From IMG/VR virus record IMGVR_UViG_3300036715_000626, positions 62,001 through 126,000 of that record: DNA of 64,000 nucleotides. One strand, 5' to 3'. A model generated the notes under the pieces. It had not been told where the DNA came from. It searched no databases and saw only the letters and a list, made by a program, of their open reading frames with translations. Numbering within the stretch: position 1 is the first letter of the stretch; each line of letters opens with the position of its first letter. Positions 5,051-63,035 of this stretch are shown here, in pieces. The position numbers and the translations under genes are program-made.

Positions 5051-5533
5051 CTATTCGATAATAAAATTATCTAATATCTCGGTAGACTTTAAAGCAGATC
5101 TCTGGACAGTTAAGTTAAACTTTACTTTAATATACTCTTTAGTATTAAGAATCATAATACGCATAAGCACGCATATGAAATCATAATCCGATGGTAAACC
5201 AGGTAACTCATCAACAATAGTGTCAGGAAAATTAAGGTATACTACCTTAACATTTTTATGCGTTACAGCATACTCTATCCTATTAAGAAGTTTTTCCATA
5301 GAAGAAACTTCCGTTAGGATTAGATTCTTATTATTTACCTCGTCAACTGTATAACCGTGTTTGACGAAATCGGTACCGAGTTTATCTAAACCAGACATAC
5401 ATTCAAAATATACTGATTCTTCATTAGTTTCACGTATATTTTGAATCGCATCTTTAACCATATCCATGTTTGTATTTACTTCATAGTCTTCTAACAGATA
5501 GACTGTTATATTGCTAAATTCGATTTTTTGCAT
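5051..5533 (-). CDS. hypothetical protein
   Basis: 160 aa ORF with AAAGGA RBS. Confidence 0.7.
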   Translation of the reverse strand: MQKIEFSNITVYLLEDYEVNTNMDMVKDAIQNIRETNEESVYFECMSGLDKLGTDFVKHGYTVDEVNNKNLILTEVSSMEKLLNRIEYAVTHKNVKVVYLNFPDTIVDELPGLPSDYDFICVLMRIMILNTKEYIKVKFNLTVQRSALKSTEILDNFIIE

Positions 5534-5561
5534 TTTTTATCCTTTTAATAATAAGTATTAA

Positions 5562-5765
5562 CTACTTAACTATATCATCATAGATCGCTCTGGCTACAGA
5601 GTGTACTACAATACCACACTTATTAACATCCAAAACACAGCTACCACGTTCTTTTTCTTTCGTACGTGATATGTTAATGTATGTTACTAAATTACTACTG
5701 CTACATGCCGGACATACTTTATAATGTCTAGGAACTAACGCCTGACAACTATTACACTTTTTCAT
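5562..5765 (-). CDS. small zinc-ribbon protein
   Basis: CNSC...CPAC motif; AGGTG RBS. Confidence 0.65.
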   Translation of the reverse strand: MKKCNSCQALVPRHYKVCPACSSSNLVTYINISRTKEKERGSCVLDVNKCGIVVHSVARAIYDDIVK

Positions 5766-7223: not shown

Positions 7224-7314
7224 TGGTGGGTGCGGTAGGATTCGAACCTACGACGTTTCTTTAAATGTGGTCGATTATGAGTCGACAGGGCTCGACCGCT
7301 GCCCGTACACACCC
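7224..7314 (-). tRNA. tRNA with CAT anticodon (elongator Met or Ile2), long variable region
   Basis: GGGTGTG/CGCACCC acceptor, GTCGA-CTCATAA-TCGAC, GTAGG-TTCGAAT-CCTAC, encoded ACCA. Confidence 0.85.
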
Positions 7315-11104: not shown

Positions 11105-11109
11105 GAAAA

Positions 11110-11180
11110 AAATAGGCTGGATTCGAACCAGCGACCGATAGCCCTTGCGGGCTATAACTCTACCACTGAGCTACTATATA
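11110..11180 (-). ncRNA. anticodon-less tRNA-like small RNA
   Basis: TAGCTCAGTGGTAGAG D arm; ATAGCCC-GCAA-GGGCTAT in place of the anticodon arm; GCTGG-TTCGAAT-CCAGC T arm; weak acceptor, no CCA, ends in a T-run. Confidence 0.7.
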
Positions 11181-30425: not shown

Positions 30426-31220
30426 TTACCAAATTTTCAATATTGAATTTGAGTTATTAAGCGGTGTTGTAGAACGTATGAGCTCGTTAACCATCTCTCG
30501 TTCATCATTGCTTTCTAACGAACAGTTAATACACTCATTGATTTTACCAGCGCTAGATATTTCTGAAATGTCCATACTACATATACTAAGTGTGTCCATA
30601 TAGAAGTTTACTAATGACTCTGAAGAAAGTTTTGTAAATTTGTTAGCTCGTTGAATACCAGGTTCAACTACCCAGTCCCATGTGACGATTTGTGCTAATT
30701 TCTTAACATTAACACCGCCGATCATAACATCCTGAGTAAATGAACGAATACTGAATGCAACGTTACACTCTGGATTGTCAAGATCCTTCTTAAGAGCATC
30801 ACCGTGAATACCGCTTGGTTTAACCCAACCTTCGATAAGAACAGTGTTACCACGACCAGGTAAACCAGAAGGCTCGTTCGTAGGAGTTAGTATGATCTCT
30901 CGAATGTGATGCGATACTAATGGTTGGTGTATACGTAAGTTACGACTAAAGAATTCTGCTTTAGTCATACCTGGTTCATATACAGGATGTCCAGCTTCTC
31001 CTTTTAGATATCCAGCTTTTAATCGGCGAGCTAAACTGTTAGATTCATTCTCGATTAAATCCTTGATACCATCCTCTAAGTAAAAGTCACCTGATGCATT
31101 AAAGGCATTAAGAGCACCCAAAGTTACTCTGTAATATCCATTAGCATCTTGTTCTAATACTTTATTATCTGCAAATGTCTTAATAGACGAAAAAATGATT
31201 TGTCCCATGATTGTATCCAA
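30426..31220 (-). CDS. prohead maturation protease (phiKZ gp175 / T4 gp21-like)
   Basis: GEAGHP (His), FSIRS (Ser), TWDWV.EPG. Confidence 0.85.
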   Translation of the reverse strand: MDTIMGQIIFSSIKTFADNKVLEQDANGYYRVTLGALNAFNASGDFYLEDGIKDLIENESNSLARRLKAGYLKGEAGHPVYEPGMTKAEFFSRNLRIHQPLVSHHIREIILTPTNEPSGLPGRGNTVLIEGWVKPSGIHGDALKKDLDNPECNVAFSIRSFTQDVMIGGVNVKKLAQIVTWDWVVEPGIQRANKFTKLSSESLVNFYMDTLSICSMDISEISSAGKINECINCSLESNDEREMVNELIRSTTPLNNSNSILKIW

Positions 31221-33301: not shown

Positions 33302-33511
33302 TTAGTCGATTTTAAATGTTTTGCGGAGTTTGTTTTCGATAATAGCATCGAGGTTGTTATTGAGGGTCATTAATTCAGCAGCATTTGTTGGTGCTGTCAA
33401 GATATCGCCTTCAGGATTACTATTAACTAGAATGTCCATAGATCGTTTAGCAACTCTTACAATGATGTCAAGCGCGTACATATTATTCTCTGTTAGATTG
33501 TCAGCAAGCAT
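33302..33511 (-). CDS. small hypothetical protein
   Basis: 69 aa, GGGG RBS. Confidence 0.6.
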   Translation of the reverse strand: MLADNLTENNMYALDIIVRVAKRSMDILVNSNPEGDILTAPTNAAELMTLNNNLDAIIENKLRKTFKID

Positions 33512-33545
33512 AGTTAGCCCCTATATGTTATAATATCAATAAAAG

Positions 33546-33575
33546 ACTAACTGACGCATAGATGCGTCAGTTAGT
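33546..33575. terminator. terminator after vRNAP beta
   Basis: 14-bp arms, AG centre. Confidence 0.7.
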
Positions 33576-36500
33576 TATAAGAATTTAGCATCCTTTTTCA
33601 AAGGATCTTTTTTCTGCATTTCTTTCCACTGGTCAAAAGTTATTACTTTAAACCCATCGATAGTTGTTCCGTCAATAGAAAATAATGATTTATCATTTAC
33701 ATTAGGTACAGCTATTTCATGGATAAAACTTAGATTACCAATATCTAACTGTGCACATTCTGAACCAGGTTTACAATTAGGTTTGTTCAGTTCCTTTTGA
33801 ATTTTTTCAAAGACATCTTTTTTAATACCTATATCCAAATCATTAGGATACCGCAATCCATGTATACCAAGAACAATACTTCCAAATAAAACAATAGAGT
33901 TTTTAGGTACGTCATGTTCAGAACAAAATGTTTTTAGCTCATCTAGCAGAGATTTAACACGCTTACTAATAACATCTTTTGAAGTTTTATCAACCTCTTT
34001 TAATCCTTCAGTAGCTACATCTCCAAAATACATATCGAGTGCTTTATCAGTTATAACAGACAATAATGTGCTAGTTGTCCCTATTAAATCGGGAGAGTTA
34101 ACAATCCTTGCTTTAATCGAAGTATTAGAGAACACAAGATCTATTTCTTTGTTATCCATAGTCTTCATATCATACTCGTATACTTCACCAACAGTAAACT
34201 TAAGTTGGTTACCTAAAATAGCTTTATCTCCGATACCCATAGTGTCTAGTACTTGGATATATATTTTTATTTCTACTTGGTCTGGTAATAATGATGTGCC
34301 ATTAACCCGATAGGTAGAATTAACACGACCCGTTTGTCCTACATCATGTTTAAGATCTTCATCAGTAAGCGCGATTAGATCTTGTAACGATTTAGACATG
34401 GTATCTAATTCACAATTGTAGTAAACTACTATTTTACTAATAGTCCCGCGCAACTTAGCTTTAGGAGAAACGTTTTTAAGATTTTGTAGAATTGCTAACG
34501 CTCGTTCGTCTAACTCTTTACCGTTAATAGAGATACCATCAGTTATAGTAAACAATACGTCACTAGGTTCTAATAAGGTTCCTTTCGGTTTAATGCCAAT
34601 TATATTATCAGTATTGCTAACAATGATAGATTTAACCTTAGTAACGGTAGCAGCCATCTCTTGATTCATTCTCTTAGAGATAGCAGCAGAGTCTTCAAAA
34701 GTTTGAATATCTTCCATCAACGCAACATTAACATAAATACCAGATTTGTAAATAACACGTTTACGATTAAACACATCTGGTTCGAAGAAACTAGTAGCAT
34801 ATGCTAATGTATCATCTTTAACTACAGTATCACCTACTATAAGAGAAGTAGTCATATAGTGGGTGTAACAACTACCAGATTCTTCTTTAGTAGTCCAAGA
34901 ACTTAATTTAATACGCTCTTGTTTTTTATCACTATACATAACCACAATTTCGGATTTAGTTACTTTAGTAACAATTCCGTCAGTACGAGCAATTTTAACA
35001 TATTTACCAGCTGCTTTAATAGGTAAGATAGCTTCATAACCAGTACGTACAAATGGAGCTCTCATATTGATCATCGGGATAGTATGTGAGTTCTGAATAT
35101 TGACGAAGTTCAATCTTTTTACATCCTCAGTTATTGCGAACGGAGCTAGCATAGAACTCGTGCTGAGTATGCTAGAGAATCCATTAGCATCGATGTCAAA
35201 ATTACCCACGATACCACGAGTATTAGATAAATTAGGATTAGCAGACATATAGGCGCTAATACCAACATCACCGCTATCTGGAGAAGATTCAGAAACTAAT
35301 CCTATCTCGCTACTATGCATTTCGCGAGTATCTCTAGACATACCTTCTTTACTTCTACCACCATGCCCTAAGTAGGTAATGGTTTCTGCTTGTTTCACTA
35401 TAGTAATAGGATTAAGATCATCAACCATAACCGTAGTGCTATCCTGATCTATTTTATTAACAACAGCATACGGATATACAGTCATTTTACTTCTACTAAA
35501 GAAACTACGATTACGGTGTTCTTTAATACTATTTACTAATTCACTATAGAGTATAGCAGAGATGCGTTCGTAACCTTTGATACTCATTTCGGTAATATTA
35601 TTAGGATTATTATAATTGTCATCAGAAAGTAAGTCAACTGCTTTTAACAACATACCTTTAAAGTTAACAGGTTGTTTAAGTTGCTCTAGAATAGTCATAG
35701 TCGTAGGATCTATAAACATTTCTTCTAAAAGTTTAATCTCGTTGATATATAGAATACTGAGCTTCATTAAGTTGAAAATGTTAGCAAACTTAGATCGTGT
35801 ATTCAAAGTATCTTTAGGAACACTAACTAAAGTAGTGTTCATAGTAGATAATCCATAGAATACCATATCAGCTTGTTTATGTGTTTTTTCAAAAATATAT
35901 TTATAATCTTTAAACGTTACTACATATTCATTAGCTGCTATGGTTGTTCGTACACTCATAGGAACTATTCTAAACTCAGGTTTTAACAAATGAATAAGAT
36001 TATCAAACCCAATATAATACGCTAGTAAAAATCCTACCGGAAATTGTTCCTTATAAATGCGCACATTAGCATATTCAATAGGTCCAGAATCTTTATGGAT
36101 ATTTAACATCTTAAAGATATCATCGATCTCATGATACTTCTTACCTTCATATCGATACAGCTTACTGTTCATATCCATTACAACAGGAGTAGTTCCAACA
36201 GTACCAACCATAACAGTACCATTATCCTCTATACCTTTAAGCATATCATCAGTCAGGTCTTTTATCATTTTCTTACGGTTATAGTAATCAAAACTAAAGG
36301 AAATGTTTCCGTAACGGAAAGCTTTAATATATCGAGATATAATATTGTAATCTTCAGGAAGAACAGCATCAATATTTTCAATAGTGAGCATAACAATATC
36401 TTTAAGTTTATTGTCTACTTCATATTTAGCTATAAGTTGTTTTCTAAACCAGTAGCCGATGTCATCTTTCTTAAAGGTAGCATTAGTTACGAATAGTTTA

Positions 36501-38281
36501 CCATACTGACTTGACAACGCCACAGTACCACGATCGATTTTACGTATAGGAAGATCCGCACGCATTTTTCTCATCGTATACGTATTACCGGCTAACTTGA
36601 AGGTTCCATCTTCGTTTACCTTCGGTAGTATAACTTTGATAGTAGATGGCTTACCATTAAGAGAAGTCATTTTAACAGTATGCGTTTCAGTTCCACCTAG
36701 AACAGATTCTTCTTCAACCACAGTATGTTCTTCTATAATATTACCAGTATTCTGAACTGCTTGGAAGGTTCTAACGATATCCTTATGCAGCTGTTCTTTA
36801 ATGTATTTTTTATCAATATTAACAACAGTATTGGTGTTGTATTCTTTATCAAAGACAACGGCGTTATCTTCAATTTTAGTATCTTGCTTAGAAACAGCAT
36901 AGTTATCTTTAGAAGTATCTAACAATCCACCCAGTGTAATATCATCATTCTCATATGGAGACTTAGCTTCATTTTGAGTTGTTATTATAGATTGTAATCG
37001 AGCAGATTCTTTCTTAGACATGTAGCCGGATTCACCAAGTACCGATATCTCAGTACTTAATTTATTAATAGGATCGATCTTTTCACTATAGAGAGCTGTT
37101 ATGGTACTTACAGTAGGTGCTGGGGCAATATTCTCTATAATATCATTAAGTTCAGAACTGGTTGTTTTAACAACCTCAGGTTCAGTATCCATATCATCAT
37201 CTGCGAGATCATTACTCTCTACGACGTCATCATTTTTCTCAGGTATGTTTTTATCAAGAACTGAATCGATGTCCACAACAGTAGTTGTGTCACCCACAAC
37301 AGTAGTTTTATCTGTAAGTTCGGTTTTACCAGTAGCTGTGACATCAGATAGTTTAATGGCGATATCTTTATCGTCTTTATCATTAGCGATAGTATCTAGA
37401 GATTCAGATTTACCATTCAGTGTTCTGAATAACATCACGTACAATAACTTACGAACAGTAGCTGCTTTATACTTAGCTAACTTACCTAAACGAGTTTCAG
37501 TGGTGTATTCAGCAACGATACTGGATAACACATTTAGATTAACCATAACTAACTTATTGTCTAGATTCAATAACAATGTTACTTTGTCTAACATACCGTT
37601 ATCGATTTTACTAAATATACTCGACTCTTTTAATTCAGGGGTTAAATACTTCCAGAGTTCTAATACATTCATATACCGATAATCGGTAAAGATATTTAAA
37701 GAACTTCTTGACAGATTAGCTGCGGCTCTGTCAAATTGTTGTCTGGATGGTAATGATGGCGGTAGATCCAGCAATATAAAAACATTACGATCAGTTACAT
37801 ATTTGTTACCACTAGTATTTGCAATTACCGTTTCCATAACATTACTATACTTGTAGTATTCCGCTAACGGGTTAATTACATACTTATACATATGGTTAAG
37901 AGAACCATAGTTAATAACTAAAAGATCCCTAGATAACATAGGAACTGTTTTAACATTTGGTTTAATAAACTTAAAGATCTTTTCATTTTTAGATATTTCT
38001 GTAATTACCGATAACGGAGTTAAGTTCAAATGTCGAAAATGCCCCAATAGCGGAATTTCAGGATACGTCAATATAGTATCTACAAAAAGCTTACCAGGTA
38101 TCTTATCGAAATAAGCATACTCTTTAGTCGGGTTAACTGTTAGATCAGATACTTTTGACCAATGAAAGATGGTGTCCAATGGAAATATAAATTCTTTAGC
38201 ATTTAGGATTACTGGTTCCAGAAAGTTAGATATCTTTCTAATACCGTATTTTCGATAGTGTTGTTCAAAGTGTAATAACAT
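33575..38281 (-). CDS. virion RNAP beta subunit (phiKZ gp178-like) with C-terminal nucleotidyltransferase-like domain
   Basis: TYLGHGGRS; G.VSESSPDSGDVG; NFVNIQNSH; FEDS; GDK...NQLK motifs; extension GS-x12-DLD. Confidence 0.9.
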   Translation of the reverse strand: MLLHFEQHYRKYGIRKISNFLEPVILNAKEFIFPLDTIFHWSKVSDLTVNPTKEYAYFDKIPGKLFVDTILTYPEIPLLGHFRHLNLTPLSVITEISKNEKIFKFIKPNVKTVPMLSRDLLVINYGSLNHMYKYVINPLAEYYKYSNVMETVIANTSGNKYVTDRNVFILLDLPPSLPSRQQFDRAAANLSRSSLNIFTDYRYMNVLELWKYLTPELKESSIFSKIDNGMLDKVTLLLNLDNKLVMVNLNVLSSIVAEYTTETRLGKLAKYKAATVRKLLYVMLFRTLNGKSESLDTIANDKDDKDIAIKLSDVTATGKTELTDKTTVVGDTTTVVDIDSVLDKNIPEKNDDVVESNDLADDDMDTEPEVVKTTSSELNDIIENIAPAPTVSTITALYSEKIDPINKLSTEISVLGESGYMSKKESARLQSIITTQNEAKSPYENDDITLGGLLDTSKDNYAVSKQDTKIEDNAVVFDKEYNTNTVVNIDKKYIKEQLHKDIVRTFQAVQNTGNIIEEHTVVEEESVLGGTETHTVKMTSLNGKPSTIKVILPKVNEDGTFKLAGNTYTMRKMRADLPIRKIDRGTVALSSQYGKLFVTNATFKKDDIGYWFRKQLIAKYEVDNKLKDIVMLTIENIDAVLPEDYNIISRYIKAFRYGNISFSFDYYNRKKMIKDLTDDMLKGIEDNGTVMVGTVGTTPVVMDMNSKLYRYEGKKYHEIDDIFKMLNIHKDSGPIEYANVRIYKEQFPVGFLLAYYIGFDNLIHLLKPEFRIVPMSVRTTIAANEYVVTFKDYKYIFEKTHKQADMVFYGLSTMNTTLVSVPKDTLNTRSKFANIFNLMKLSILYINEIKLLEEMFIDPTTMTILEQLKQPVNFKGMLLKAVDLLSDDNYNNPNNITEMSIKGYERISAILYSELVNSIKEHRNRSFFSRSKMTVYPYAVVNKIDQDSTTVMVDDLNPITIVKQAETITYLGHGGRSKEGMSRDTREMHSSEIGLVSESSPDSGDVGISAYMSANPNLSNTRGIVGNFDIDANGFSSILSTSSMLAPFAITEDVKRLNFVNIQNSHTIPMINMRAPFVRTGYEAILPIKAAGKYVKIARTDGIVTKVTKSEIVVMYSDKKQERIKLSSWTTKEESGSCYTHYMTTSLIVGDTVVKDDTLAYATSFFEPDVFNRKRVIYKSGIYVNVALMEDIQTFEDSAAISKRMNQEMAATVTKVKSIIVSNTDNIIGIKPKGTLLEPSDVLFTITDGISINGKELDERALAILQNLKNVSPKAKLRGTISKIVVYYNCELDTMSKSLQDLIALTDEDLKHDVGQTGRVNSTYRVNGTSLLPDQVEIKIYIQVLDTMGIGDKAILGNQLKFTVGEVYEYDMKTMDNKEIDLVFSNTSIKARIVNSPDLIGTTSTLLSVITDKALDMYFGDVATEGLKEVDKTSKDVISKRVKSLLDELKTFCSEHDVPKNSIVLFGSIVLGIHGLRYPNDLDIGIKKDVFEKIQKELNKPNCKPGSECAQLDIGNLSFIHEIAVPNVNDKSLFSIDGTTIDGFKVITFDQWKEMQKKDPLKKDAKFL

Positions 38282-61568: not shown

Positions 61569-63035
61569 ATGGAAAATATCGCAGAAACACCAATAATAGA
61601 AGAAATACCTTATAACGTAGCTGTTTGTTATGCTGATGGAAGTGCTATGCCGAATCCAGGATTCTACGGAACGGGTGTACATGGTTATATATACAATACT
61701 ATTAATCTAGATAAGAAAAATGGTGACAAACCAAGTAAGTACGTTATATCAGATATTGGTTATTTAGAAGCAGATCAATTGCTTAAATACAAATATAGAA
61801 CTGTTATACCAGATTATTATATTAACGGGTATGTTAGTTACGACGGCATCGGTACTAATAATATAGGAGAACTTAATGGGTTTATAGAAGTGATCACTAA
61901 CTTAATGCAACAAACTGAATTAGCTATTAAACACTACATTATTAAAACCGATAGTATGTATCTTATCAATGTTGAGAAATCTATATTACGAGATACAGCT
62001 AGAAGTTGGGCAAGTGAATTTGGTAAACCTAATTTACAATACTGGCATGTACTTGAAAAACTTATTCTAGAGATGAAAGAAAAAGATATAACTTATGAAA
62101 TAGTTAAAGTCTTAGGCCATTCAACATCGTTAGGAAATATTCTAGCAGACCGTTTAGCATTATTAGGACGTACTGAATCAACGCGTTTAAACGCAGATAT
62201 CTCTATAATGGTTACTCCTGCTAAGAACTACTGGACTGCTAAAGTTGATAGACATCCGTTCCTAAGTTTTAAACAATTGTTCTTTACTAACACATTACGA
62301 GAATCTAACACTGAAAACTTGTATGCTGTGATGAACTACAAACGTGATGTAGAACCTGGTAAGAAATCACACGAAGCTTGTTTTGGACTAGTACTCTTAC
62401 AAGAACAACAAACCTACATTGAAAGTGTTATTGACGTATATCAAAAGCATCTTAAGACATTATCGATAATTTATACAGCAAATCTAAATGATATTTATTC
62501 ACAATATGCTATCTTGTATAATAGTTTGTTTGGAGATAAAATATATAATTATAACCGTAAGAGAGGAATTCTGAGTGTATTGGAAAGACTTGAATTAGTA
62601 TATGACGTAAGACCTACTGGATTAGCTAACCAAGCTATCGACAAGATAATGGGGCTCTACACAATTATTCGTGAATATCGATCAACTGATAAGGTTCATG
62701 CTAATCGTCTCTTTATAGACGTCACAGATAGCTTCTACGGTGTAGATGAGAAAGGTAAACCAGTTACTGTTATTAAAAACGGTATTAACTCTGTTAACCT
62801 TGAAGTAAACGCTTTCGATACAGATTTGTTTATTCCGATTGAATTAGGAAAAGATACTTTAGAACGTAATGTATTTAAACGTATTGAAAAAGAAAATACT
62901 AAAGTTACTTTAGTGGTCACTAAGATATCTCCGACATTTATCGATTACTATCTTGTAGTTGAAATGGTTAACACTGGAGATATTTCAGTATGGTGTAATT
63001 TCTATAATAATAACATACTTTTACCAAAAAAATAA
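61569..63035 (+). CDS. RNase HI with C-terminal extension (phiKZ type)
   Basis: YADGS..PNPG; TNN.GEL; TDS.Y; VLGHS...GN.LADRLA. Confidence 0.9.
   Translation: MENIAETPIIEEIPYNVAVCYADGSAMPNPGFYGTGVHGYIYNTINLDKKNGDKPSKYVISDIGYLEADQLLKYKYRTVIPDYYINGYVSYDGIGTNNIGELNGFIEVITNLMQQTELAIKHYIIKTDSMYLINVEKSILRDTARSWASEFGKPNLQYWHVLEKLILEMKEKDITYEIVKVLGHSTSLGNILADRLALLGRTESTRLNADISIMVTPAKNYWTAKVDRHPFLSFKQLFFTNTLRESNTENLYAVMNYKRDVEPGKKSHEACFGLVLLQEQQTYIESVIDVYQKHLKTLSIIYTANLNDIYSQYAILYNSLFGDKIYNYNRKRGILSVLERLELVYDVRPTGLANQAIDKIMGLYTIIREYRSTDKVHANRLFIDVTDSFYGVDEKGKPVTVIKNGINSVNLEVNAFDTDLFIPIELGKDTLERNVFKRIEKENTKVTLVVTKISPTFIDYYLVVEMVNTGDISVWCNFYNNNILLPKK

Follow-up and report, generated by a model that had tools for sequence, protein, structure and literature searches.

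A predicted nucleotidyltransferase domain fused to the virion RNA polymerase beta subunit of an uncultured jumbo phage, a candidate capsid cargo

What is a nucleotidyltransferase (NTase)-like domain doing at the end of a virion RNA polymerase (RNAP; virion RNAP, vRNAP) subunit? The question is raised by a 64,000-nucleotide stretch of phage DNA, here called the window (positions 62,001 to 126,000 of IMG/VR record IMGVR_UViG_3300036715_000626), which belongs to a 205-kb IMG/VR contig of sample 3300036715. On the minus strand of the window, one open reading frame (ORF) encodes a vRNAP beta subunit and continues, past the expected end of that subunit, into a tail with the motifs of Pol-beta-type NTases. 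An original prediction, made from the letters alone, had proposed that this tail is an NTase, that a prohead protease site stands in front of it, and that the polymerase acts as its packaging carrier. Proteins ejected with phage DNA act before phage gene expression and are well placed against host defence. To our knowledge, an enzymatic activity is established for very few ejected proteins, the classic cases being T4 Alt and IPI.

A vRNAP beta subunit with an additional C-terminal domain

Translation of the ORF gives a single open frame whose sole stop codon is the terminal one. The conserved ending of the beta subunit, ALDMYF (residues 1414-1419), is followed by 149 residues in an uninterrupted frame, in agreement with the in-frame extension of about 150 residues that had been noticed there. 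The PHROG 3148 profile ("RNA polymerase beta subunit") aligns over residues 4-1420 with its positions 3-1422 of 1424 (E=0); it is exhausted near residue 1420, and the tail is therefore a genuine extra. Within the tail, F-G-S (residues 1466-1468) is separated by 12 residues from D-L-D-I (residues 1481-1484), which fits the signature hG[GS] x9-13 Dh[DE]h, and Q-L-D-I-G follows at residues 1511-1515. The fused gene and its parts are laid out as follows.

33575..38281, minus strand: vRNAP beta subunit plus predicted NTase domain, 1568 aa (stop codon within the coordinates), no internal stop
34025..38281, minus strand: vRNAP beta (N-terminal/DPBB) subunit of the phiKZ gp178 / 201phi2-1 gp273-274 type, residues 1-1419, assigned by phrog_3148, tblastn and gene order
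33983..34024, minus strand: linker G-D-V-A-T-E-G-L-K-E-V-D-K-T, residues 1420-1433, absent from all RNAP relatives
34007..34015, minus strand: candidate prohead-protease site A1423-T1424-E1425, with the cut after E1425, fitting S/A-x-E (phiKZ) and A-x-E (SPN3US)
33578..33982, minus strand: predicted minimal Pol-beta-fold NTase domain, residues 1434-1568, from an AlphaFold2 model, Foldseek and the phrog_12854 family
33878..33883, minus strand: G1467-S1468 of the hG[GS] motif, conserved in homologs
33833..33841, minus strand: predicted metal-binding D-x-D, D1481-L-D1483, on strand b2, conserved in homologs
33743..33745, minus strand: D1513 on strand b3, candidate for the third carboxylate, without variation in the close subfamily (9 members)
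33536..33575, minus strand: intrinsic terminator hairpin, 13-bp stem plus T tract, directly 3' of the stop codon

The junction is also present in a second contig, L002 (1038 bp, JGI sample 3300037010), which spans the last 70 RNAP codons, the linker, the full tail, the terminator and a 69-aa gene downstream. It differs from the window by 5 substitutions in 1038 bases, the 4 inside the ORF being all synonymous; the protein is identical and the junction is read through without a stop. Since this independent contig agrees with the window across the junction, an assembly error concealing a stop codon, which the original prediction had named among the circumstances that could undo it, is very unlikely, and we consider it ruled out. 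We also considered whether the tail might be made separately, by internal initiation or a programmed event, or whether the long ORF might be an artefact of assembly or an illusion of annotation. In favour are the existence of stand-alone homologs of the tail and an in-frame ATG, M1417, shortly before the junction. However, M1417 is part of the conserved RNAP ending, and nothing resembling a Shine-Dalgarno sequence precedes it; no in-frame ATG, GTG or TTG occurs between it and the domain core, the linker included; and the two independent assemblies show the same bases throughout the junction. Nor was a sigma-70-type promoter-like site found on the coding strand from the junction onwards; the only such site on that strand ends ~145 nt upstream of it, within the RNAP body, and matches of this kind are fewer than in shuffled sequence. 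As no start codon is available between M1417 and the core, the tail would be made only as part of the polymerase subunit; separate expression was rejected, and we regard this whole group of explanations as highly improbable.

Residues 1-1419 are, by homology, a vRNAP beta subunit of the phiKZ gp178 type. When 50,697 phage records were searched by tblastn, 311 records annotated as RNAP beta matched the RNAP body, with a best identity to cultured phages of ~30%, and megablast of the locus returned zero matches among the same records; judged by these comparisons, the phage is one without a close cultured relative. Downstream (3') of the RNAP gene, on the same strand, lie a 69-aa ORF, a 459-aa protein (phrog_3841), a 243-aa virion structural protein (phrog_2926) and a 264-aa protease (phrog_3014). 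The first and the last of these have the following positions.

33302..33511, minus strand: 69-aa gene that sets the downstream boundary of the insertion, conserved in contigs L008 and L009
30426..31220, minus strand: prohead (head maturation) protease, 264 aa, phrog_3014, E 6e-64

The phiKZ-type prohead protease that had been proposed at 30426 is thus confirmed by its family, four genes away from the polymerase. The gene order matches that of Xanthomonas phage RTH11 and of Pseudomonas phage 201phi2-1, in which gp273/274 (RNAP beta, phiKZ gp178-like) is followed by gp272 to gp268. The neighbourhood is one of head genes, with the beta subunit followed by a small ORF and by gp177-like, gp176-like and gp175-like (protease) genes, and this conserved order with 201phi2-1 and RTH11 supports the assignment of the subunit to the gp178 type. 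The 69-aa gene is 57% identical to its counterpart in L008 and keeps the same position in L009; it matched no Pfam or PHROG family and showed no BLASTP similarity to the 71-aa RTH11 gene at the equivalent position, and in 201phi2-1 gp272, of similar size, occupies that place. A tblastn match in RTH11 that seemingly reached residue 1476 was discarded, as the 71-aa downstream gene of that phage matches neither the tail nor the 69-aa gene.

In the GenBank record of 201phi2-1, gp273/274 are identified by mass spectrometry and gp268 is a virion structural protein on the same basis. The vRNAP subunits are head ejection proteins (PMC5694885), and from the orthologs of 201phi2-1 and SPN3US identified by mass spectrometry (PMC5694885) we infer that the fused beta subunit is present in virions.

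The original prediction had advised a look for the fusion in gp178 homologs. A search with residues 1200-1568 over ~5.8 billion protein clusters retrieved 86 full-length relatives, up to 67% identical, all of which match the RNAP part only (60% of the query). These relatives share the C-terminal ending "..RIVNSP..GTT..MYF", and 85 of the 86 stop 0-6 residues past the equivalent of its last residue, F1419; the 311 cultured-phage records likewise finish no more than 6 residues from MYF. None of them carries the tail, so the fusion is specific to this lineage; among ~15 billion proteins the junction is present only in the window protein and in the L002 fragment, and tblastn with the tail gave nothing at E <= 1 among the 50,697 phage records. 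In the closest relatives, which come from contigs of 133 kb and 11 kb, the gene order is unchanged and an NTase gene is missing; in L008 and L009 the RNAP stop is followed directly by the terminator hairpin and then by the 69/70-aa gene. The composition of the tail looks foreign: GC3 (GC content at third codon positions) is 0.174 in the tail versus 0.255 +/- 0.025 (minimum 0.195) in equal-sized windows of the RNAP body, and the contigs that carry stand-alone homologs have a GC content of 24-30%, the window 35%. Judging from these searches, the fusion is unique and recent, and the simplest history would be that a gene of a phage richer in AT was inserted, in frame, after the MYF codons and before the terminator.

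The exception among the 86 relatives, P0088 (1626 aa; L011 732-5612), is a gp178-type subunit that continues into a 214-residue beta C-terminal subunit (phrog_3233, E 6e-69). This refusion shows that the MYF end is the natural split site of beta, able to accept a continuing polypeptide. It also indicates that the vRNAP beta split is not universal, and that the split point is the very point at which the NTase is attached. With the P0088 tail as query, a beta C-terminal subunit was not found in the window; it is presumably encoded elsewhere on the 205-kb contig.

Predicted fold and likely chemistry of the tail

By the library searches made here, the tail belongs to no curated family. It matches phrog_12854, a group of unassigned function, at E 1e-5, and 22 of 36 family members hit that group too; NCBIfam gave nothing meaningful, and the best hit of a sequence profile search of the PDB, at E 0.15, was TM1012 ("putative nucleotidyltransferase"). 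When 1.84 billion representative proteins were searched with a profile, 68 relatives were recovered at E <= 1e-3. A few relatives match weakly the NTase families DUF6036, NTP_transf_2, Polbeta and MTPAP-like, with only 8 of 38 giving a weak hit to any family of the NTase clan.

For structure prediction, a first model that included the RNAP end and the linker and used 10 sequences reached a predicted local distance difference test score (pLDDT) of 76 with no usable Foldseek result, and it was replaced by an AlphaFold2 model of the domain only, built on an alignment of 36 sequences (pLDDT 92.3, predicted template modelling score 0.87). The modelled topology is a1-b1-[GS]-a2-b2[DxD]-a3-b3[D1513]-b4, followed by a hairpin and a C-terminal helix, and it follows the a-b-a-b-a-b palm-like element order expected of Pol-beta NTases. 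When the model was compared to the PDB with Foldseek, as the original prediction had recommended, the top 50 matches were nearly all NTases of the Pol-beta superfamily, including CdnC, TM1012, ANT(4'), JHP933, TUT7, ANT(2'')-Ia, CutA, Cid1, poly(A) polymerases, MNT and the CCA-adding enzyme. The best whole-domain matches were TM1012 (template modelling score, TM, 0.49/0.44) and ANT(2'')-Ia (TM 0.48/0.40).

Conservation agrees with the fold. The G, the S and both Asp residues of D-x-D are kept in at least 90% of 36 homologs, as are the intervening Arg and a C-terminal K-D pair, so that, for the D-x-D pair, the earlier worry that the catalytic Asp residues might not be conserved in homologs has lost its ground. 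In the 9 close homologs G1467, S1468, D1481, D1483 and D1513 are invariant; this close subfamily also shares the invariant motifs S-F-x-H-E, Q-W-K-x-M-Q and D-P-L, which are annotated in no library that we searched. Based on the AlphaFold2 fold, the PDB matches and the motif conservation, we conclude that the tail is a predicted minimal Pol-beta-fold NTase whose active-site residues are under constraint. The NTase signature read from the letters has therefore held, although each of the supporting structural matches is weak. With the minimal Pol-beta NTases NTP_transf_2 (PF01909), DUF6036 (PF19502), TM1012 (PDB 2EWR/4HX0), ANT(2'')-Ia and MNT, the tail has in common the hG[GS]-x12-D-x-D motif, the a-b-a-b-a-b core, a size of ~130-170 aa and a C-terminal K-D helix; it differs from them in its score below the Pfam gathering threshold, in having no PDB match at E < 1e-3 and in the lack of a HEPN partner.

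Several known NTase classes were considered and set aside. A CCA-adding enzyme, poly(A) polymerase or terminal uridylyltransferase would have an RNA-binding neck, body or central domain; the ~125-residue core of the tail ends ~55 residues past the candidate third carboxylate, and the matches to CCA-adding, poly(A) and uridylyl enzymes cover the head only (target TM 0.09-0.19). CD-NTases (cGAS/DncV-like) have ~300 aa and two lobes, the tail has 135 residues, and the target TM values for CdnC, CdnD and CdnE are 0.13-0.20. As to an MNT-HEPN module, no HEPN partner was seen: the neighbour in the window is the conserved 69-aa gene, and a Pfam scan of the neighbours of stand-alone copies on contigs L003, L005, L006 and L012 gave no match. 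The small size of the domain and the nature of its nearest structures (ANT(2'')-Ia, TM1012 and MNT) lead us to favour a protein or small molecule as the probable acceptor, rather than RNA tailing. The original prediction had put forward, as candidate activities, the tailing or repair of RNAs such as the tRNA mimic, the AMPylation of host proteins and the synthesis of a signal nucleotide; the core shows no RNA-binding body of the kind found in CCA-adding enzymes or poly(A) polymerases. Elsewhere, more distant members of the NTase family occur in fusion with domains of other kinds, namely protein kinase/RIO, NUDIX hydrolase (twice), GrpB and GNAT acetyltransferase (P0175, P0178, P0197, P0222 and P0238), combinations which suggest small-molecule or nucleotide chemistry in the wider family.

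The best structural matches overall are small uncharacterised proteins of jumbo phages, phiKZ-like ones among them (201phi2-1, RP12, RSF1, EL, PhiEaH1 and Noxifer), found with a Foldseek probability of 1.0, TM 0.55-0.63 and similar length, at only 14-20% identity to the tail; BFVD entries with a tail-like fold are B3FJG4, A0A1L7N1D0, A0A0K2QRC9 and Q2Z0W0. In 201phi2-1 the tentative structural homolog, by length and topology, is gp304 (L046 32524-32946), which the record does not mark as a virion protein; a hidden Markov model search over 246 kb of that genome found no homolog. Since gp304 carries G-F where G-S would be expected and H-A-E where D-x-D would be, it is likely an inactive relative.

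Two RNA genes were also observed in the window with ARAGORN, a tRNA-like gene whose anticodon is called only as the two bases "ca" (11108-11180, minus strand), presumably the "tRNA mimic" that the original prediction had mentioned as a possible substrate, and a 91-nt tRNA-Met (7224-7314, minus strand). Nothing connects either of them to the NTase.

Leader arrays and the candidate protease site

The closest homologs of the tail (P0002-P0009, P0162 and P0163) are encoded by separate genes, have 131-184 residues and are 47-58% identical to it. None of these adjoins a polymerase gene. They sit instead in tandem arrays of small genes that share a ~13-residue N-terminal leader, of which there are two types: M-I-Y-x-I-N-K-x-[ILV]-L-L-E-E on contigs L003, L005 and L012, and M-x-[IV]-P-I-K-Q-I-[IL]-[LT]-E on contigs L013, L014, L016 and L017, some of these being sewage contigs of 80-296 kb. 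The arrays have the following positions on their contigs.

L003 493-1670: leader array
L005 40-1911: leader array
L012 446-989: leader array
L013 9513-11390: leader array
L014 9513-10480: leader array
L016 6651-7398 and 10001-10555: leader arrays
L017 825-1968: leader array

We compared 15 array genes on 6 contigs after removal of the first 16 residues, and significant BLASTP similarity was found only from NTase to NTase. The leader ends in [LI]-x-E in 14 of the 15 genes. In T4, the capsid-targeting sequence (CTS) has 10 residues, the last of them forming an L/I-x-E site at which the gp21 protease cuts; it is common to otherwise divergent internal proteins, and T4 relatives vary the cargo behind CTS-like leaders (PMC9026906). 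T4 also packages foreign proteins that have been joined to IPIII at its C-terminus, and it delivers them into cells (PMC9026906), which sets a precedent in experiment for the arrangement seen here. As unrelated genes share only the leader, as they do in T4 internal-protein loci, we read the NTase family as one repeatedly used as capsid cargo. The start of the fused copy lies just past the place that leader and spacer would occupy, and by analogy the polymerase subunit would here take over the addressing role. The leader-bearing contigs of 80-296 kb show a locus pattern that resembles that of T4.

In front of P0002, which is the closest of the stand-alone homologs, a remnant leader "M-I-Y-S-K-K" (L012 28-60) meets a stop within an A run, and the called gene restarts at a TTG three codons later; the remnant reflects either the decay of a leader or an error in sequencing the homopolymer. 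On L016, a gene of the Acb1 family (anti-CBASS phosphodiesterase) lies at 5095-5649, ~1 kb upstream of two leader-bearing genes, a position that would fit a counter-defence neighbourhood. Searches of IMG/VR with DNA patterns for the two leader types returned nothing for one and, for the other, 22 single matches of a chance-like kind, and the array neighbours gave nothing, or two weak matches, by tblastn against cultured phages.

Could the prohead protease release the domain from the polymerase? The A-T-E of the linker fits the S/A-x-E motif of phiKZ and the A-x-E motif of SPN3US (PMC9026906, PMC5694885), and ATE sites are used in SPN3US gp50 and in the SPN3US portal protein (PMC5694885). The linker had a pLDDT below 50 in the first model and is predicted to be disordered. 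Orthologs of the window protease in relatives carry Pfam Peptidase_S80, and the window protease has S-S-E at residues 199-201, where relatives have G-T-E or A-S-E and near which SPN3US autocleavage maps (AQE-203), so that the residues at the autocleavage position fit an [S/A/G]-x-E specificity. Processing at the C-terminus also has a precedent in T4 Alt (PMC9026906).

Several observations argue against cleavage. The motif [SAG]-x-E occurs 13 times in the protein versus 14.7 expected, and A-x-E, with 3 occurrences, is likewise at chance frequency; the chance of [SAG]-x-E in a linker of 10-16 residues is ~0.09-0.15, and that of the strict A-x-E 0.025-0.04. In SPN3US, the only relative with an exhaustive map, all cleavages except the protease's own remove an N-terminal propeptide, the vRNAP beta subunit is uncut and phiKZ gp178 is probably uncut (PMC10052503, PMC5694885); the 201phi2-1 beta subunit sheds its N-terminal 275 residues (PMC10052503, PMC5694885). 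The site is found in one lineage only. The predicted protease site therefore stands as a motif that obeys the phiKZ/SPN3US rule and falls short in its occurrence, which is no above-chance one, as the caution attached to it had anticipated for motifs this short. Release at A-T-E1425|G by the prohead protease is plausible, although we lean slightly against it. The notion of the RNAP as a packaging carrier fares in a comparable way, with indirect support from the T4-like leaders of stand-alone homologs for the carriage and a three-residue motif at chance frequency for the release.

A proposed route into the host and its alternatives

Based on these results, we propose that a small Pol-beta-fold NTase gene from a more AT-rich phage was joined in frame to the 3' end of the vRNAP beta gene, before the terminator. 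The fusion protein would assemble into vRNAP, be packed into the prohead and be ejected with the DNA, as its orthologs are, the polymerase subunit replacing the leader as packaging address. The domain may be released at A-T-E1425|G by the prohead protease or else remain on its flexible linker, and after ejection it would pass a nucleotide, AMP being the likeliest, on to a protein of the host or to a small molecule, in the service of early takeover or counter-defence. Taken as a whole, this explanation, in which the inserted NTase is capsid cargo carried by vRNAP beta, ejected and active in nucleotidylating a host target, is the one that we favour by a little. A broader version, in which phrog_12854-type NTases are an unrecognised family of injected enzymes, loaded by interchangeable routes (a T4-like leader or vRNAP) and nucleotidylating a defence effector or an anti-phage small molecule before phage gene expression, is speculative and we hold it to be rather unlikely.

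A number of points weigh against the cargo explanation. The match of the tail to Pfam NTP_transf_2 (PF01909) is below threshold (E 0.027; 15.3 bits versus a 21-bit cutoff), the PDB matches are individually weak, with a best E of 9.7e-3 and no TM above 0.5, and the column of D1513 is variable (D/E/K/R) in the wider family. Within +/-10 kb of the array genes on the 80-296 kb contigs, neither a protease nor a capsid gene was found. Family members without a leader occur too, two of them in records labelled as bacterial/archaeal metagenome-assembled genomes (P0196 and P0037), so the NTase family is not exclusively cargo. The fusion is known from two near-identical contigs only, for which reason its long-term retention is not demonstrable, and the evidence for selection is limited to the 4 synonymous differences between them. 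Packaging of the fused form would follow from orthologs, the phage itself being uncultured. Finally, a tail placed at the beta split site could disturb vRNAP assembly rather than ride along.

The same placement bears on a different explanation, in which the NTase is never released and serves as a tethered accessory domain of vRNAP, for example in non-templated 3' addition to early transcripts or in self-modification. At the split site, where P0088 continues into the C-terminal subunit, the tail would sit on the assembled enzyme; the uncut SPN3US and probably uncut phiKZ beta subunits, the N-terminal position of known cleavages (PMC5694885, PMC10052503) and the chance frequency of the ATE motif all agree with such tethering, and terminal uridylyl and adenylyl transferases are among the distant Foldseek matches. 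However, the related enzyme is a stand-alone protein of 131-184 aa, away from polymerase genes, in other phages, the core has no RNA-binding domain, its best global matches ANT(2'')-Ia and TM1012 are of a small-molecule type or uncharacterised, and the linker is predicted to be disordered and bears a canonical site. We consider a permanently tethered role unlikely.

A fusion so rarely seen might also be a recent and essentially neutral accident, in which a mobile gene landed at the RNAP 3' end, lost its start and has no function in the virion. Its occurrence in two near-identical contigs among ~15 billion proteins, its still foreign composition (GC3 0.174 versus 0.255) and the fact that all 86 relatives manage without the tail would be expected of such an accident, and the stop-truncated leader in front of P0002 suggests turnover in the family. 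Yet the domain is complete to its last conserved residues with every family-invariant motif intact, the junction is exactly in frame and the terminator is retained directly after the new stop. In addition, 4 of 4 ORF substitutions between the two variants are synonymous, a small sample, and an essential vRNAP subunit is under strong selection against a harmful appendage. An accident of no consequence appears quite unlikely to us.

The proposed system combines parts of known kinds: a subunit of vRNAP, a minimal NTase, and a mode of packaging that relies on fusion plus a protease site. The vRNAP beta subunits of Chimalliviridae-type jumbo phages (phiKZ gp178, 201phi2-1 gp273-274 and SPN3US gp241) are homologous over residues 4-1420 and share the gene order towards the protease; none, described or metagenomic, has a catalytic domain past MYF, and their known variation consists of the N-terminal propeptide of 201phi2-1, a mobile intron and the refusion with the beta C-terminal subunit in P0088. 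In the literature that we searched, no report describes a jumbo-phage vRNAP subunit with a fused catalytic domain, and no case occurs among the 86 metagenomic and 311 cultured homologs. In T4 internal proteins and in the IPIII fusions (Mullaney and Black; PMC9026906), cargo is joined to a packaged item with a Glu-specific prohead-protease site at the joint; the address here is a 1419-residue essential subunit instead of a 10-residue leader, and the fusion is a natural one. The T4 Alt ADP-ribosyltransferase, an enzyme that is carried in the head, processed by the prohead protease and ejected to modify the host as soon as infection begins (PMC9026906), resembles the tail as proposed; it differs in fold and chemistry, and is a separate protein with its own propeptides and no polymerase fusion.

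In conclusion, the locus presents a natural enzyme-type domain, as predicted, attached to the virion RNAP of a nucleus-forming-type jumbo phage, and it ties that NTase to a family which elsewhere bears capsid-targeting-like leaders. The arrays of such leaders outside T4 relatives are a second observation worth attention. If the proposed route is true, the tail would represent a new class of injected enzyme, the gp178-type C-terminus would tolerate cargo and could be useful for loading proteins into jumbo-phage heads, and the T4 principle of variable cargo behind a constant leader would extend to contigs of up to ~300 kb from sewage and other metagenomes.

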